NCBI GenBank assembly: GCA_904063045.1
Contig: CAJFCJ010000002.1
Span: 1,634,422-1,698,421 of the forward strand
DNA from: Dimorphilus gyrociliatus
Lineage: Eukaryota > Animalia > Annelida
Direction: 5' to 3'
Length of the DNA: 64,000 nt
Shown: positions 49,633 to 60,400 of the stretch, in pieces
Layout: the number at the start of each line of letters is the position of its first letter
How positions within the stretch are numbered: position 1 is the first letter of the stretch
Notes under the pieces: model-generated
Databases searched by the model: none
What the model saw: the letters and a program-made list of their open reading frames with translations, nothing else
Told to the model about the DNA's origin: nothing
Program-made: the position numbers and the translations under genes

Positions 49633-51376
49633 TTATTGTCTTAAGAATTTAGTGCTAATTGGTATATGAAGTAGAGAACTTGAGGAAGATTGATTAACAT
49701 ACTTTTTCCTTATATAAGGCTGATAGGTTTGTTTAGGAGCACTAGGAGTTATTTTACCCAATTTCTTCATGGCTTTCTGCCTGTGAGAATAAAAAAAAAC
49801 ACGTGTACAAGGAGAAATTAATGTGGGAAAAAATATTTAATACCTTCGATGTTCTCGTCTCTCTTTACCCCAACTTGAGGCTGTAGCTGGTAGCCAATTC
49901 TTGGGTGTTCCCGCCCCTATTTCATCTTCATTGTTAGCACCTAGTCGATTTTTCGGTAAACGTTTTCTTTTCAGCGAAGCCACTTTTTTTTTCATCAATA
50001 AGAAAAAAACATTAAACATTACTTTATTAAACCTAGAAAGTTAAAGGTTATACACAAATCCATTAATAATACGCCTAAATCTACTCCTAAATAAAACAAT
50101 AAGTAGATTATTGTTGCGGCTTTTATACGTTATTTTTTTTTAAAAGTGTATTGTATAAAATTTAGAATCTCTACTTACGGTACCGGTCGAACTCCTGACG
50201 AGTTGGACCTATATTTACTTTCGAGTTGGCCGCCTGTTTTTGTTGATCGCACGTAGAAGATGGCAATAACCAGGGTGGTGTAGCTCCAGTGTGTACATTA
50301 CCCTGATTAGGCGTCGGCTAGAATAAACAAAACCTTTAAACCTCGACCTAACTGAGGGAATGATATACTCTTACCGTTGGTTTACTTTTAGTTAGTCCAT
50401 TTCTTTCGGATGTTTGTTGGATGTTAGTAGAATGGGTTTCAACCTTTGTTGCGCAATTAATCTGTTTATTTAAGGAATTAATTCGTACTAAAATATATTT
50501 ATAAATAATGTTCCATGAACATAATATAATAGATTTTTTGTTTTAAGAGCTTTAAAAAAAGATACGTCAACCAACACTTGTTATGTCTCTTCTTAAACTT
50601 TCCTGTGCAAGAATACTTTCTTTTATCTGGAATGTTCAACATCTTATTAGATATATTTTAAACAATATAATATATATTTATTTATTGCTCATAATATGTT
50701 AATTACGTACTAGATCCAATTTCGTAAATCTATCATTTTTATACTGATGGAGAGCCTTCTTATTCTTTTCTTTAAATCTAAATTTTTCGAATATTTTAGC
50801 CAAAACTTTAAATAGATAGCTAATTAGTCGAAAAACTTACTCGTCTACAAACATAAAATCGATAACATACTCTGTAATCACGTTCCTATCCAATTTATTC
50901 TCACGCCAAAATGATAATGTTTCTTTCATATGCGAATCTCTAAAATAGAAATCACTCTTTTAATTTATAATTGTACTTGAGCGCACTTATCTCATTTCTT
51001 TCTTGTTTATAAAATACTTACGAGTTTAAATGTTCAATAAATTTTTGATTATATATAATGAATCTGTCATTTATTTCATTCTTCTCTACATCTTTCCAAC
51101 ATAAAACACACCAGATTTTTTTATTTACTTCATTTCCATTACTCATAACGTCAGCAATGTTAGGTTTTTCCATATGATTTTTTGCATCTTTAATCTGCAA
51201 AAGTTTTTTTTTCTTTAAGATGATGAGTAAGAAACTTTGAGAGATTTCTTTTTTTGTGTTACCTTAGTCATAAATTTTTCCAAAGCTTTTTTCACAGAAA
51301 TTTTATGCTTCTTTGTGTAAACATGACCTTTGTTTTCGGTGTTTTTTTGGCACACTTTACAATAGAAATATTCCAT
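49633..51376 (-). CDS. CENATAC: CENATAC / CCDC84, minor-spliceosome-associated zinc-finger protein (3' end uncertain)
   Basis: CKVCQ..GHVYTKKH..ALEKF, WCVLC..FIEHLNS..H..FWRENK, GNVHTGATPPW, IGPTRQEF, KRLPKNRLGAN and WLP..SWG match CCDC84 (GHVYSRKH, GNIHSGATPPW, IGPSYEEF, LPPDRVGANF, WLPSFG). Confidence 0.85.
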
Positions 51377-52320
51377 ATCAAGAACATCAGCTGTTTGCGA
51401 TCCAGTACTGAGAATTTTTTGTATATAATTATACTAATTGGACAATTCTTTAAATGCGTTTATAAAGAATTTAAGAATGGCTATTATTAGATTTAGATGC
51501 TATATTCTATGCTTGTTAAATCAGTATAACCATGCGACAGAGAGCTTACTTTTCTTCAATTACTATTAATGCTTTTATTTTTCTAGAATTTCTATAAACT
51601 TGAATGGAAAGCTAGGTCAGATGACTAGTGTTTGAAAACAGATGAAAATTATTTAGCAGACTACTTTTTCAAAATGGCGCAAAAACATATACGTTTATAT
51701 TTTCGTATCTTTAGCCTATTTAACGTTTATATTTTACATTTAAAAGCTAAGAATGTAAATGATAAAAAACCTCTATTTAGAATTTTATACGAGACGAAAT
51801 TTTCAAAAATTGGAATTAGAAGCCGAAAACCTTAAATTTACAGGAAGTCGTACAATTCTAGTGCAGAGTTTTTGTAAATTTATAGATTACACCTATTATA
51901 CATGTTTGATGATCCTAATAAGAATTTAATTATGTTCTTTTGTAATTACCGTACTACAAAAGAAGAAAAAAATCAATTTTTGTGTCTTGAAAAGACCTTT
52001 ATCAAAAACAAAATATACTATTAAGTATAAAATATAACAGTTTATTAGAGAAATACATTACACGTGTTATTGCACGTAAATTAGTGTATCGTATTTTCTA
52101 TACATAGTTTTTTCGTCTGTAAAAAGGAATGAAATGATATTTCAAAAGTAAATCCTAAATTTAAGAAAGTTTAAAAACTTTCCATTACAATGATTGAAAA
52201 TGAATACTTAAAACTAATACTAAAACATAGCTTTTCTATTGTCCAATTGTTTGTTGAATAGATAGATGATGGTATGAAAAAAATGAACATAACCTAAATA
52301 TCTTAACAATTTTAGATTTT

Positions 52321-52981
52321 CTAAGTTGATAATACAACAAGCAGCGAAAGCAAACAGCATAACAATAACAAAATAAGATGATTTGTATAAAGTGCAGCCT
52401 GACCAAAAACTGATGGATCATAATCAAAACAATTGGTCTCTCCTTCTTCAACATAAAACCTTTGCCCTAGACAAAACTCGGCTCCTGTTTGATATTTCTG
52501 ACCAATACTATGCCTTTGAAATTCAGCTTGAGAGCATTCTTCGTAAATTTTCTCGCAAAATCTTGAACACACTTTAGCACGATCGTTTATATACCAAACA
52601 CCCTGTTCGGGGCTACAAAAATAACACATCAAGTAATTCATCATATTCTGGCACGTTTTAGTTGACTTGTATAGTGGATACATTCCACTAAAAACAGAGG
52701 TAACTTCTGTCCTCCGGCAACAAGCATTAGAAGCATACCAAGAACAATTTATTAAATTTCCCTGAGGTGATGAGAATCGTGCTCCTTCTGATCAAAGAAA
52801 ATAAAGATTTTCTTGGTAAATTGTCTAAATAGATATGTAGTTTCAACTTACTGCCGAAATAAGTACATGGCTTTGATTCACTAATCGTGGATGTTACATA
52901 TTGACATGTTATTATTATTAGTAGTAATATAAAAAAGGAAGAAATTATGAAATTTCTCCCATGAATTATATTAGCAACCAT
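52321..52981 (-). CDS. Folate-receptor-fold (Folate_rec) protein with signal peptide and GPI-type hydrophobic C-terminus (2 exons)
   Basis: Signal peptide, then PCTYFG..NCSWYASNACC..TCQNMMNYLMCYFCSPEQGVWY..KVCSRFCEKIYEEC..FC..NCF, which follows the Cys spacing of the FOLR/RBP/Juno/HHIP-N family. The protein ends in a hydrophobic tail with no cytoplasmic domain. Confidence 0.78.
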
Positions 52982-53091
52982 TATTGTTTACCGGCATGGA
53001 ATGCAGTTCCGATTCGGTCAAACTGAAGTGTCATTGAAGGCAGATCTCTGTGCCTGTTTGATTGTACGACGACAGATGTCGCTTCCATCAT
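52981..53091 (-). other. 36-codon upstream ORF whose stop overlaps the ATG of the folate-receptor-like gene (TAATG)
   Basis: ATG ATG GAA GCG ... GGT AAA CAA TAA, open for 111 nt. The last A of TAA (52981) is the A of the main ATG. Confidence 0.6.
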
Positions 53092-53260
53092 TCTATCCGT
53101 ACAATTTTCTTCGAAAGTTTCTTTAACATTTGAAATAAAAGATTAAAAGGAAGAGCAAATGGTCAGAATCCTTCACTTTGAATATAATTATAACAATAAA
53201 TAAATGTCCATTTCTCAATACTTTTCTATGTTGCACAATTCTTAACTATTTCAGACTTTT

Positions 53261-56200
53261 TTATTTATTTTGCTCATAAAATGCTTTTCCATCTTTGAAC
53301 AGATTACAAAATTTCCAATTACTATAAATCATAACAAAACCTATAAAACAACATAAGAAACCAATACCAATGATTGAAACTGTTGAATCAATCTCCTGTG
53401 GGAAGCAGCAAACCCATACGGCAATATCATCATTTAAATTACAAATTGAATAATTTGTATCGATAATAAAAACTTTGAAAGTGAATAGAGTGTTTTTTTT
53501 TACATTAAATGTTACGGAATTATGAGATTTGTTTAATATTTCATATTTCCTATCAGTTGGCAATTCTAATTCTAAACTTGGCTCGTCTGAAAAGCATTTT
53601 CGATAATTCTTAAATTTCCATATTTTTGACTTATTCTTAACGTTGTAAGAGGTTTTTATCATTTCAGACCAAGTTTGAGCTTTGCTTTTACATCCTGCTG
53701 TCTTTTCTGTATAAGAATACTAAAGAAAACTTTAGAAAATATTCTATGTTTTAAGTAAACACGTTATTCTTACTTTGAAATCATTTCTATCATTTAATTC
53801 ATATATTATATAATCAGCTTCAACTTCTTTTATGAACTTTTCATGGTCCCACAACTCAAGAATTAAATTTAATGACTGATAATTTTTTACTATTATAGGA
53901 CAACCAAATCTTTTAAAGTTATATTGTTTGCTGGTTCCATTTGGTAGGCTATATGTCATATTCAGAAATTGATTACAAACTGTATTTCGTTTTATTTTCA
54001 GATGCTGCTTTTTACAAGATGGAATGGTAGTGGCTAAAATTATCTGATTAGGGCCACTACAAAAGCCAGTAGTTTCGAAAGGTTTGATACCTATTGTTAA
54101 AAGGCCACCTTCTCTATATTTATGATGATATCTAAATGAGACATTTACTGATTTTATTATCATATTATCCATTATTCTATAAAATAATAAGGTGTTTAAT
54201 TATAGAGGCTTTTGGAATTTCATATAAAATACTTCATTGAGTGTTTAGTTTCTATGGTAACGCCTTCCTCTCTCCCTCTTATTTTAACTAGTAAGTTGTT
54301 AAATTTAGACTGCTTATGTATAATTTCAGACCATAGTCTTATTTCTCCCGCTAAGTCTAATCTATTCGAATATTCAAGGACATTAAATTTAAGACTTTCG
54401 TAAGGACAATCAACATCTTGTAATCTTCCTTTTAGATGATATATAGCAGATGTCATTTCTGCATGTAGAGGTATTAAATTTCTGTTTATGTTTTCCTGAA
54501 AATATATTTGATATTGTCAATTACACACAAATTTTGTAAGGATAAATCTTTACAAAACTATCTCTTTCGACGACATAAAATCTATCAAGCAAACTATAGA
54601 GCATCAGATTAGCCGTTTTATGAAAAAGAGGATCCAATTTTACGCACTGAGTCGCAGAATTTGTAACTAATATTAATTGATTCCCTCTTTCTAATAAAAG
54701 TATTACTCCTAAGTCATTTGATTTCACAGATTTTACGTAAGACAAGTAGCAAGGAGTGTCGGAATGTATATTCTTAACTTTTCCAAAGTAATTTTCATTT
54801 TCTCTGCTATATAAAACTTGTGACGATTGCCAAATTAAAAACTCTCTCTCGATTGAAGGTAAGATACTAAGGAATAAATCATCGTTTCGATCGACACTAT
54901 GAATTACGCTTAGGAGTATTTCTAAATTATCAGTTAAATAGTTCCAAAGGTAAACTTTTAGTATTCCTGTATGGTCTTCCAAAGCAACAATAGCTCCTCC
55001 ATGGACGATATCAGGAACGATATCTCTAATCTGTAATAGGGCATAGAAAATGAGAACTGAATAATTGAACATAGGTGGATATTTGATTTATTTAAACTTT
55101 AACTGTCATCCATCCTAAGAGCACCCTAAAATTCTTTAAAACGTATTTGTTATTGGTATTCGAATGTCTTATGTAAGCCAAGTTATGGTTAAACACAATA
55201 GAAGTTCTTTGCTTGGTATTTGCTAGTGGATGCAAAATTTTACATATGGCAATTGAGGACGTAGAAATATTTGTTATATCAAAAGTAATTTCGTCTGCAA
55301 GAGAAATATATAAACTATTCCTGTCTAACATCCAAATCCTTTTATCGATGAGTAAATAGATATAATTATCATCTATGGCAGCATCTGTAGCCTCAGGAGA
55401 GGTCTTTAAAGTAAAGATAAATCTTATAATGTAAAGGACAACAGGGACTCAGTATAGAATTTTATGTTACGAACAATTTGTTCTCTCTTGAAATTGCCAT
55501 ATATACTTTTACTTGTTATAAAACCATCTTCAGTTAGTTTAATTATTTTCCTATAAGGAAGAAAAGGTGAGCATTTCCATTATGAAGCTGAAATATAAAG
55601 GTGATTACGAGTCTAGGAAAATGGCAACGTGAGGTTTACAGCTGTCCTGTTAATTTTTGCATTAACTTATGTTTAAACTTGTTAAATGACAAGGACTCAA
55701 GTAACGACGCGTTTTTACTTACTATAACAATTTTTGGCTGATTTGTTGGATGACCTCGAATTTTTGAGAGCTGCTTGAAGTGAATAAATTGGTACAAACC
55801 AGGCACATTCAATTGTAATCACCAACCTCTCTACTTTCAAAGAATGGATTCGGGTTAAAAGGCTCAATTAGAACAAACGTGTCTCTATAAGAAAAAACTT
55901 ATGATAGATCTAGTAACAAATTTCTTCGGGGCTTTGACCGTTATAGTTGTGTATACTACCTTACTTTTGCGTCATCAATGTAAGTATTAAAGCCATCTAG
56001 CATAATTGCAAATCTGAATGCTGTTAATGTTGGTAAATTTAATTTAAGTTTGGAGCAATCTATATCTATGTAGCTACAATTAGGATAATAGACAATGTAG
56101 AATCATAAAAATTAGCATTTAAGTTTGATACCCTTCTTCATAGTTTATATGATATGCATCTCGTAAATCGCTATCTTCATAGAAGATGTCCCTTTGGTAG

Positions 56201-57145
56201 GGATGTTTAAGATAAAATTTATGACCGCTACTAAAATATAATTGAGTTAAGGCTTTTGAACTCTGAGGAGAAAGGAGATTGATTTTCTTTTAGAAAACTT
56301 CTTAAGAAAATTATTTCAGAGCGTACTTGGCTTGGTAGTAGTGCCATGTTCTCTCTTTCCGCTTTACTAGCGCTATATTCATCAATTATCCATATTCTTA
56401 GAATATTCTATTTTAAAGACTCATTTTTATTTTAAAATCATATTGATATTATTTTAATTACATTCAATGGGTAGTTATTCATGTAATTATTACTAGTATC
56501 AACTTCAATTGTAGATCTTATGTACAAACAGGTGAAAAAACAAATTTCCATGAATGAATGATATGAAACCTAGATTTACTACCTAATATTTAAGAACTTG
56601 TAATACCACAAGTAAGTTGCAGACTCCCCACTTATCCTTAAATATTTGCTTTTTGATGGCGAGTACTGTTATAAAATATTTTCATTACATCTTAAATTAA
56701 TAGACGGATGTAAGATGACTCACCCATAATTTGTAAATTCCTGGATAATTACAAACAATCCTAGAATTATAATTCACTTAGTTAATTTTAAAGAAAAAGG
56801 AAAACTTAAATTCAGACATAGCTAAATGATGATCTATGAAACAATTGCTTTCTGTCTTAAATTTTACGTTTCCGCTAATAACTTTAACTTTGATCTATAA
56901 TAATAGAAAATATTAAAAAATTATAGACTATTCACATTATTAACAACTTTTTGTCTTGTTTGAAAAATTCCTGGATCATTAATTTCAAATCTTGAAGATA
57001 CAGACATACATAAATTTATATTTATAATTATATACAGCATATTAAGTTATATATTGTACAGAATTGCTATAATATACCTCCAAATTTCATTCTGATTTCT
57101 TACAATTTTAAGAATAATTAGAATAATAAAACAGCAGTGCTGCAT
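53261..57145 (-). CDS. CATSPERE: CatSper channel auxiliary subunit epsilon homologue (many small exons, signal peptide, single C-terminal TM)
   Basis: Manual splicing gives an open frame with collinear matches to remembered human CATSPERE: IWR/LWR; YLWYY/FLWYY; LRIWIIDEYSASKAE..PSQSSKALT/ITVWAYDPESADPDE..PSINSIVLS; IPLHAE..CPY/YPLHLE..CPY; FGCPI..LELWD..FIKEVEADYIIYELNDRNDF/YGCPL..VQLFD..YVKDVEANFIVWEIHGRDDY; AGCKSKAQTWSEMI/SGCLHEAQTWKSMI; NYRKCF/NYKHCF; YEILN/YEIIN; FKVFIIDTNYSICNL/FRVKILDPNYSFCNL; then a TM helix. Confidence 0.88.
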
Positions 57146-57467
57146 TGTTTTAAAAATAGTTTCACCAATATGTACAATGTTCCATTCGTTTTGTTCTATT
57201 TTCACATATTATCACTCCAATCGTTTACGTTTAAAAATTTGCGATATTACGTATTGTTTTGGTTTTTGGCCTTTTATCTCATATTTGTATTTTCCCAATT
57301 CCCCTATTGCACCCCATGAAAAAAATCAGAAAAAGTAATCGAAATTTCAGCGCCACCTATAATAATAATAATATCTGTTAATGTTTTTTGTTATAAAAAG
57401 TAAAGAAGCGAATCATTGATTTATTTGAAATAAATAGTTATTCTGTTTAATACTAAGAGTCAGTTTT

Positions 57468-60400
57468 TCAAGGTTGCAGATTCGATAATTTATTTCTCAA
57501 CTCTTTTATTACACTATCAGTCAATTTCTTGCGATTCTTCTCCTCTGGGCTTTTACGTTTTAAAGTTGTGAGAACGGATGAACCTTTATTTCTTTTTTCT
57601 CCTTCCTTCATTCTACAAGGTTAAAAAAATGAAATCTTTGATAAAAAAAAACCACAAGAGTACTCAGAACCTGCAGCAACTTACTTTTCTAGTATCGTTA
57701 ATGCAACATTGCCATCGACTCTAGAATACCTTCCCTCTGGTTTTCCAAAGTCGGACAAGTACAAGCTCCAGTCATTGTTAAGAAATAAGTCAACAACTTG
57801 CCGTAAGTCGTAAAAGGTCATTGCTAAGAAGTCATCGCCTAAATCCCCAATTAATTCTTTTGATGCTTTATTAGCAAACATTTCGCACCATACAACATCC
57901 AATTCAAATTGTTGCAAAGCCGTTAAAGTAATAGCTGTGACTTGAGGATCAGTTATCATTTTCATTAACCAGCAGGCAATATGTTTGCAAGCTGATAAGC
58001 AGCTCATTTGAAAGACGTGTTTTGGTAGATTGGCAAAAGAAACAAAGGTTGCCTCGAGATAAGTAAAAGCATCTTTTATAAATGGTGACGCTTGACCTAA
58101 TGGCACATCAGATGTCCAATCATAATCGTTACAGCTAAACATTTCGTCTAATTTTTCTTCGATATTTCGATAAATGGCCACTTCGGCCTTACCTCTAGCA
58201 TCCTTAAACATAGAACTTCCCAACAACTTAGAAGTTTGCCCTAATGTAGCATCGACGTTACTTTCTTTCGATATGAATTCTTCAAGATATACACATGATT
58301 TTTCTAAATAATCCATATTAACCGAAAGTTGTATAAGTTTTTGTTGAACCTCATATCGTGGTGTATCTATTACCTCAGCTAATGATGTGTTAAAGATTGA
58401 TAGCACTGAGTTTGCATCTTTCCTTATCATATCATCTAGTTCCGCATCACTAATTTGTAGACCTTCTGTAAAATTTCTGCACGCTAATATATACTCCAAC
58501 ACTTCCTTGAACGATTTGGGAACCATAGATGAGAAAGGTAGAGTTGTTGGAAAGGTGATATTGTCCTGCTCGTAAATTTTATAGGGAAAGTCTTTGAACA
58601 GCTTTGCATATTCTTCTTCGCTTTCTATTTCCATAGGATGATAATTATCCTCGTCTGTTATTCTCTTGAAACGATCTCGCCATTCCGATACCAAAACATT
58701 GGCATACAACTCTCTTCAGATTTTAAAATCAATTACAATAGGATGCAATTAACATAAAAATGACAAACCTCAATTGAACTAAAGTTGACTCCATTGGACT
58801 AATATCAAACCCATAGCTCTATGTGATATAGATTATTAAGCATTTAAACCGTTTTATGAAGATAGCTAAAAGTATATTTTACCTGTAAAGTTTTACAAAA
58901 AAGTAGAAGCAAGTTTTTTACTTTAAGCATATATTCAGGATCTCGAATATAAGCAGAATATTTTAATAGGTTATTTGACAAAACTTGTAGGCCTGTCTTC
59001 CATAATTTATCCAAGAAAGTTTTTCCGTCAGCAGACTTAATAGTATTCATAACATGTTCTTCTATAATGAAAAAACCAGACACTTCATGTAAATATTGCC
59101 TAAAACAATTTAATACATTTTCCCCCTGAATTGATAAAAAAAAATGCACATTAATAGCTAAATTACCGATTTATTTTATTGATAACATACAAATAGGCTG
59201 TCATCCGGCTTTTTAACAATTTGACTCTGTTTAAGGAATTTCTGTTAGCGACAGATTTATTAATTTGATCTTCTAATACATACTAATGCTTGGGGAGGAC
59301 TAAGAGCTAGTTTTGATTGTTGTTCACGCTGGTCTTGATAATATTTATCAAAATTGGATCGAATTCTCTGTAAGACAAATATTATTTACAATTATTCGAT
59401 CTATTCTTGGCAGTTAGCTTACTAGAACTTGATATATGTGCAAACATCGATAAATTGGTGAATAATCAATAGACTCTTGAGGACTCATTTTATATTCATC
59501 GCACATTTCTTCTTCAGGTTGTTGGTGACTTTCAACCTCATCTGTAAAGGGATTTGGAGCAGAAGGAGCTGAAGGAGCTGGGCGTTTCTTTTTTTTCTGA
59601 GCAACTGATTCATCGATGCCATGATTTCTCGCTGATTGTATCATTGCTAATTCGCCGATTCTACTTGTACTCTTTCGTAAATTAGTTAGAAAACTATTTA
59701 ATTCAGCTTTGGAGCGGGTTTGAATTTTCTTCCTCATCTGAAACCACTCGTTAAAATAATATAATATGTCTATTTTAGGGCATATGTTTACTTCTTGAAT
59801 AGAATCCGTCATTGATTCCGCAAATTTATAATCTCGAACCCTTGGTAAACACGAATGTTCCAATTCTTCGAGCGTTTTCAACGCCGAGTAAAACTTATTG
59901 TTATTCATTTGTTCCTCAAGTTTCTTATACATTTCGAGAACTAATTAATGTAAAGAACATTATTATTGATACAATTATCTATTTCGAAAAAATACCTGGT
60001 AAGCACATGCTGAGATGTTCTATTGCATCAGCAATGTTCTTTTGCATTTGTCGTTTAGCTAACAGTTTTTGGCCTTTGACTGTTAATTTTTTACCAGAAT
60101 CCTGTAACTCTTTGTTATTTCTCTCGATTAATCTCTATAAATAAAAGAATCTCTCCATATTTACATAAAAAAGAAATCTAATTGATATTACGAAAAGTTG
60201 ATCAACATCTGATCTAACATCTAGTAATCCCAAAATCGACTCAATAAAACTTTGATAGTGGAAGTTACACATTGTCTCAATATCCTTATCATGCTCTTTA
60301 ATTCTTTCGTCGAGTCGTATGACAAATTTTTCAGGGGCCTTTTCCTTGTAAACATTTCTATGAAAAGATCATTAGTTGAATTTAAAAATTTAGTCAACTA

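Follow-up and report, generated by a model that had tools for sequence, protein, structure and literature searches.

The closest described counterpart of the gene reported here is mammalian CATSPERE (C1orf101), the epsilon auxiliary subunit of the sperm channel CatSper, which is represented by chain H of the PDB entries 7EEB (mouse) and 9UBW. In the mammalian complex, four single-pass subunits, epsilon among them, form with their ectodomains a canopy above the CATSPER1-4 pore; the partner of epsilon is CATSPER2, and the epsilon ectodomains are required for assembly (PMC12851028). Epsilon is reported to be ancient, of the same age as the pore subunits, and delta (CATSPERD; 7EEB chain G) to have appeared later (PMC5362262). 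The present analysis concerns a stretch of 64,000 nucleotides (nt), hereafter the window, of the 4.6-Mb contig CAJFCJ010000002.1 of the annelid Dimorphilus gyrociliatus (Dinophilidae; GCA_904063045.1; PMC12890243). An intact CatSper-epsilon gene made of many small GT-AG exons had been proposed at positions 53261-57145 from the letters alone (the original prediction), with the host correctly taken for a protostome, probably an annelid. The results given below indicate, with a probability of about 85%, that this gene is the D. gyrociliatus orthologue of CATSPERE.

With about 30% GC, the window is rich in AT, and numerous short pieces of open reading frame (ORF) lie on its minus strand between 57145 and 53261. 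Read in this direction, 18 exons join into a single ORF of 2,817 nt, which starts with the ATG at 57145, encodes 938 amino acids (aa) and contains a sole, terminal stop codon (TAA, 53263-53261), overlapped by an AATAAA in exon 18. All 17 introns have GT..AG ends and their sizes, 53-87 nt, agree with the median intron of 66 bp in the genome of this species (PMC7854359). The exons of about 40 nt that had been foreseen are three in number (43, 37 and 38 nt). The final exon set was built from RNA-contig joints, reading frame and homology; an automatic dynamic-programming model, in which five small exons were missing and two exon ends were wrongly placed, was superseded using the RNA joints. The homology is unbroken over every junction without RNA support, e.g., L-L-P-S-Q/S-S-K-A-L-T at exons 7/8 and H-S-M-K/I-M-D-N at exons 16/17. 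The weakest point of the model is the donor of intron 13 (GTTCGT at 55474), picked solely for frame keeping as the only nearby GT that gives both the frame and an intron of normal size.

The RNA evidence comes from one public run (X1, sample type unknown), the contigs of which match the window with at least 99% identity; of the words sampled from the stretch, 70% occur in the run, a share near the exon fraction, and the contigs represent spliced RNA. Of the 17 introns, 12 (1, 2, 3, 4, 8, 9, 10, 11, 12, 14, 15 and 17) are borne out in this run, 11 of them by joints directly spliced in the contigs and intron 1 by positions within one contig, and introns 6 and 13 have no joint among these RNA contigs. 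From exon 14, one contig continues past the stop codon for about 1 kb more. An alternative joint, 55587/55723, leaves out exon 12, with its acceptor at 55587, and reaches a stop after 14 codons; the isoform that contains it is non-productive.

Profile searches and the full-length tree both point to epsilon. A full HMMER search with exon 18 gave 118 relatives, and the spliced protein aligns across aa 7-921 to ~945-aa proteins labelled epsilon or C1orf101-like by their source (Priapulus, salmonids, sardine, echidna and a marsupial); shorter or partial epsilon-labelled records belong to a nemertean, an acorn worm, a brittle star and a coral. A region search with the C-terminus of the Priapulus protein gave turtle epsilons only, and one with an alignment of that protein and exons of the window gave back nothing but the query. 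Delta-labelled proteins align solely to aa 736-916. When residues 1-735 were used as a phmmer query (Z = 1e6), epsilon N-termini were matched at 5.5e-13 to 1e-9, and this search matched no delta N-terminus, neither the delta propeller (PF15020) nor the delta Ig-like domain (PF23747). In the full-length tree, which was run in quick mode and in which the worm row is long-branched, the protein lies within the metazoan epsilon clade (SH-aLRT 97), with the delta clade as its sister, and the approximately unbiased (AU) test rejects a clade of the worm protein with delta (p 0.015). The gene might be read as a delta subunit, or as a descendant of an undifferentiated delta/epsilon ancestor, on the strength of exon 18, which shows no preference between the mouse and human chains of delta (2.5e-10) and epsilon (4.4e-10), and of the tree of the C-terminal domain, where the delta/epsilon split is weak (support 69). 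This reading is very hard to credit, since exon 17 favours the epsilon chains of the PDB over delta by six orders of magnitude (5e-7 versus 0.6), the epsilon-specific domains are all recognised by profiles of other epsilons, the N-terminal regions of delta have no match in the above search, and epsilons (about 920-990 aa), unlike deltas (about 730-805 aa), have lengths near the 938 aa of the worm protein.

The 938-aa product is predicted to be a type I membrane protein with the complete domain order of epsilon, from a signal peptide to a short tail. Hydropathy and domain profiles concur here with the signal peptide, large ectodomain and single C-terminal transmembrane helix that had been proposed: the hydrophobic N-terminus, a predicted signal peptide, has a 12-residue hydrophobic run after Met1, followed by a W-R-F/Y motif as in the homologues, and one strong C-terminal helix (aa ~898-918, under a single hydrophobic peak at aa 896-918) lies within the end of the C-terminal domain. 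When the Pfam boundaries known for a fish epsilon are mapped onto the worm protein, N-terminal domain (NTD) 1 falls at aa 11-86, NTD2 at 93-199, the beta-propeller at 257-581, the immunoglobulin (Ig)-like domain at 599-695 and the C-terminal domain at 734-918. Profiles of these five domains, made from other metazoan epsilons with the worm protein excluded, score 19.6, 44.7, 59.2, 25.9 and 157.4 bits, respectively; the best of 500 shuffles, used as the control, reached at most 12.6 bits over the five domains and at most 6.5 bits for the four N-terminal-side segments. The Pfam family PF22850 (CATSPERD-E_C) is matched with 47.1 bits by exon 18 and with 34.5 bits by exon 17, above the curated cut-off of 27.4, and exon 18 matches the PDB chains 7eeb_H and 9ubw_H at E ~4.5e-10; a search of exon 15 against PDB gave no match.

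Mammalian CATSPERE has the same domain order, a similar size and one C-terminal membrane helix, and the motifs GC..AQTW..M, NYR.CF and IDxNYSxCNL are common to both proteins. The worm counterparts of these motifs singled out in the original prediction, AGCKSKAQTWSEMI, NYRKCF and IDTNYSICNL, are all inside exon 18 and align to the corresponding motifs of mouse and human CATSPERE, and the collinearity claimed for the whole length extends over aa 7-921. The worm protein, known here from its sequence, is about 20% identical overall to the mammalian protein and has a shorter cytoplasmic tail. The best full-length match is the C1orf101-like protein of Priapulus caudatus (XP_014661862), and a 448-aa partial epsilon-like protein of Tubulanus polymorphus (XP_074662650) is among the top-scoring matches; both belong to the same metazoan epsilon clade, in which the worm protein is far more divergent than they are (19-24% identity) and is not firmly grouped with them. 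With CATSPERD it shares the PF22850 C-terminal domain and the membrane helix, whereas the propeller and Ig-like regions of CATSPERD are unmatched by the N-terminal 735 aa of the worm protein.

Several observations weigh against the reading as an orthologue of CATSPERE. The protein is strongly divergent, with about 19-26% identity to other epsilons and a terminal branch of 2.2, and the tree based on the C-terminal domain only is weak, with the worm protein pulled to protist and fungal homologues; that affinity is taken as long-branch attraction, and the full-length tree disagrees with it. The curated Pfam models of the N-terminal side of epsilon (PF22841, PF22843, PF22844 and PF22849) have no match on single exons. 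Introns 5, 7 and 16, for which the proposed splicing is not borne out, are retained in unbranched contigs (records 4, 3 and 1, respectively) with no spliced alternative in this one run, and each leads to a premature stop, in part the kind of counter-evidence that the original prediction had named. Depth is only ~2-14 across the middle of the gene, and both gene ends are on contigs common to the neighbours, so that the transcripts need not come from a promoter of its own. The contig with a mean depth of 387 (56489-57260 and beyond) contains the 3' end of the upstream gene Sec15/EXOC6 (Sec15 stop at 57468) together with epsilon exons 1-5, intron 5 being retained; depth is the mean of a whole contig, and the end contigs are uninformative on epsilon expression. 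This joint contig looks like read-through transcription because operons and trans-splicing are reportedly lacking in D. gyrociliatus (PMC7854359), and a tie of epsilon to Sec15 of either kind was dropped on the same ground.

The retained introns, the alternative joint, which likewise leads to a stop, and the very long branch in the tree could be read as signs of a decaying or non-productive gene, the transcripts of which mostly keep stop-bearing introns and yield no full-length protein. Such a state is highly improbable: a frame of 938 codons over 18 exons in DNA of this composition excludes chance, the ends of all the introns are intact, all five domains still score with the family profiles, and the exons 3' of retained intron 16 keep 51% identity in a related species, through the membrane helix and the tail. 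Retained-intron contigs are also common to highly expressed neighbours and may therefore come from read-through RNA. A true epsilon homologue whose pore subunits have been lost, i.e., an orphan or repurposed subunit acting perhaps outside sperm, would be in line with the frequent loss of CatSper in animal lineages (PMC6660944) and with some transcription in run X1; the loss pattern of auxiliary subunits is reportedly the same as that of the pore subunits (PMC5362262), and this reading is improbable. Under the preferred reading, an orthologous epsilon subunit, the low, partly unspliced RNA of run X1 would fit a gene restricted to the males, which in D. gyrociliatus are dwarf. It is a rather unlikely, if conceivable, idea that introns 5, 7 and 16, which bear stops and stay unspliced beside fully removed neighbour introns, serve as a detained-intron switch limiting epsilon to the dwarf male germ line, the RNA being possibly female-dominated.

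Table 1. Exons of the putative CatSper epsilon gene of D. gyrociliatus, with positions in the window and the evidence for each.
Feature	Position	Strand	Evidence
Whole coding sequence, CatSper epsilon	53261..57145	-	Spliced ORF without internal stop; collinear with metazoan epsilons, aa 7-921
Exon 1: start codon, predicted signal peptide (MQHCCFIILIILKIV...), then conserved W-R-F/Y motif	57078..57145	-	First ATG past an in-frame stop; RNA contig ends the exon at 57078; aligns with epsilon N-termini
Exon 2, 43 nt	56948..56990	-	RNA joint 56894/56948; join of 57078 to 56990 implied by contig positions
Exon 3, 77 nt	56818..56894	-	RNA joints on either side
Exon 4, 37 nt	56724..56760	-	RNA joints on either side
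Exon 5, 83 nt, Y-L-W-Y motif of NTD1	56583..56665	-	Upstream RNA joint; intron 5 (56582-56517) retained; homology spans the junction
Exon 6, 55 nt	56462..56516	-	Frame and homology only; intron 6 without a listed RNA joint
Exon 7, 81 nt, L-R-I-W-I-I-D motif of NTD2	56327..56407	-	Homology; intron 7 (56326-56263) retained downstream
Exon 8, 131 nt	56132..56262	-	RNA joint 56073/56132; P-S-Q-x-S motif unbroken over the exon 7/8 junction
Exon 9, 114 nt	55960..56073	-	RNA joints on either side
Exon 10, 58 nt	55827..55884	-	RNA joints on either side
Exon 11, 48 nt	55723..55770	-	RNA joints on either side
Exon 12, 38 nt	55609..55646	-	RNA joints 55645/55722 and 55549/55608; skipped in the alternative joint
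Exon 13, 76 nt, L-T-E-D-G-F motif	55475..55550	-	Acceptor RNA-supported; 3' end uncertain
Exon 14, 306 nt, beta-propeller	55098..55403	-	RNA joint 55030/55098; propeller profile, aa 257-581, 59.2 bits
Exon 15, 477 nt, beta-propeller	54554..55030	-	RNA joints on either side
Exon 16, 263 nt, propeller end and Ig-like start	54233..54495	-	Upstream RNA joint; intron 16 (54232-54177) retained, stop at 54222-54220
Exon 17, 403 nt, Ig-like domain, then start of the CATSPERD/E C-terminal domain	53774..54176	-	PF22850, E 2e-8; RNA joint 53719/53774
Exon 18, 459 nt, remaining C-terminal domain, predicted helix (~53386-53324), short tail, stop	53261..53719	-	PF22850, E 2.6e-12

The searches also touched on the history of the family. 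The protists Gefionella and Rhodelphis, as well as zoosporic fungi, have full-length homologues of about 930-1,010 aa (P0167, P0108, P0112, P0100, P0070), in agreement with the reported pre-metazoan origin of epsilon. A protein of the hemichordate Glandiceps talaboti labelled delta-like (XP_077988239, P0071) forms a well-supported clade with vertebrate deltas in the full-length tree (P0040 was likewise noted), which suggests that delta may predate vertebrates. An epsilon-like protein of 1,011 aa (P0063), encoded by a single uninterrupted ORF on JAKGBN010043587.1 of GCA_022702875.1 (501-3536), groups with the Priapulus protein.

The public annotation presents one gene at window positions 49633-56727 with an unnamed product of 1,044 aa, for which CATSPERE_NTD2 (PF22843, as a weak match), CATSPERD-E_C and CCDC84 are recorded as Pfam domains. 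Two separate genes lie 3' of the epsilon stop, a folate-receptor-like gene (52981-52321) and CCDC84 with its own ATG at 51376; the public model thus omits epsilon exons 1-3 and merges three genes, in parallel to the RNA contigs that run across gene borders. The directly downstream gene is small and, on the same minus strand, encodes a member of the folate-receptor family (Pfam Folate_rec, 6.2e-10) with a signal peptide and a hydrophobic C-terminus. That family also includes mammalian Juno, the sperm receptor of the egg, and any tie between this neighbour and a Juno-type role is speculation. In a related species (assembled from run ERR14224705) the exons of the epsilon gene are laid out alike and the folate-receptor-like gene is again the neighbour, the last epsilon exon being 51% identical. 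Contamination, for which the flanking genes provide a check, is unlikely, given the length of the contig, the equally compact neighbours and the layout and neighbour shared with the related species.

As the worm protein keeps every domain of the mammalian epsilon architecture, the simplest reading is that it would serve D. gyrociliatus sperm as epsilon serves mammalian sperm. By analogy with the mammalian complex, its ectodomain would be part of the canopy above the CATSPER1-4 pore in male germ cells, alongside the beta, gamma and delta-type subunits, its membrane helix would be packed onto the voltage sensor of CATSPER2, and both the assembly and the delivery of the channel controlling flagellar beating would depend on epsilon. 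CatSper and sperm are not mentioned in the D. gyrociliatus genome paper, which describes a compact genome of 73.8 Mb (PMC7854359), in keeping with the compaction assumed in the original prediction; retention of epsilon in such a genome fits the published view of conservative genome shrinkage.

The same prediction stressed that CatSper is missing from most protostomes, and here it overstated the rarity of the channel. CatSper has been reported, together with sNHE and sAC, from Brachiopoda and from some arthropods, and as absent from Mollusca (Romero and Nishigaki 2019, PMC6660944); CatSper1 is tabulated for the annelid Lamellibrachia satsuma, for Lingula and for a springtail (PMC13674862, Table 1), the Gene Ontology term 'CatSper complex' is enriched in male-biased genes of the annelid Platynereis (PMC11195272), and RefSeq already has records from a nemertean and a priapulid that are labelled epsilon-like. 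The evolutionary picture of CatSper is unchanged: annelids, brachiopods, nemerteans, priapulids and some arthropods were known before to have the channel. What the locus adds is a spiralian data point for an ancient epsilon subunit in a very compact genome, and it corrects a mis-annotated locus of a reference annelid genome, where the 1,044-aa product really represents three genes and the true N-terminus of epsilon is absent from it.

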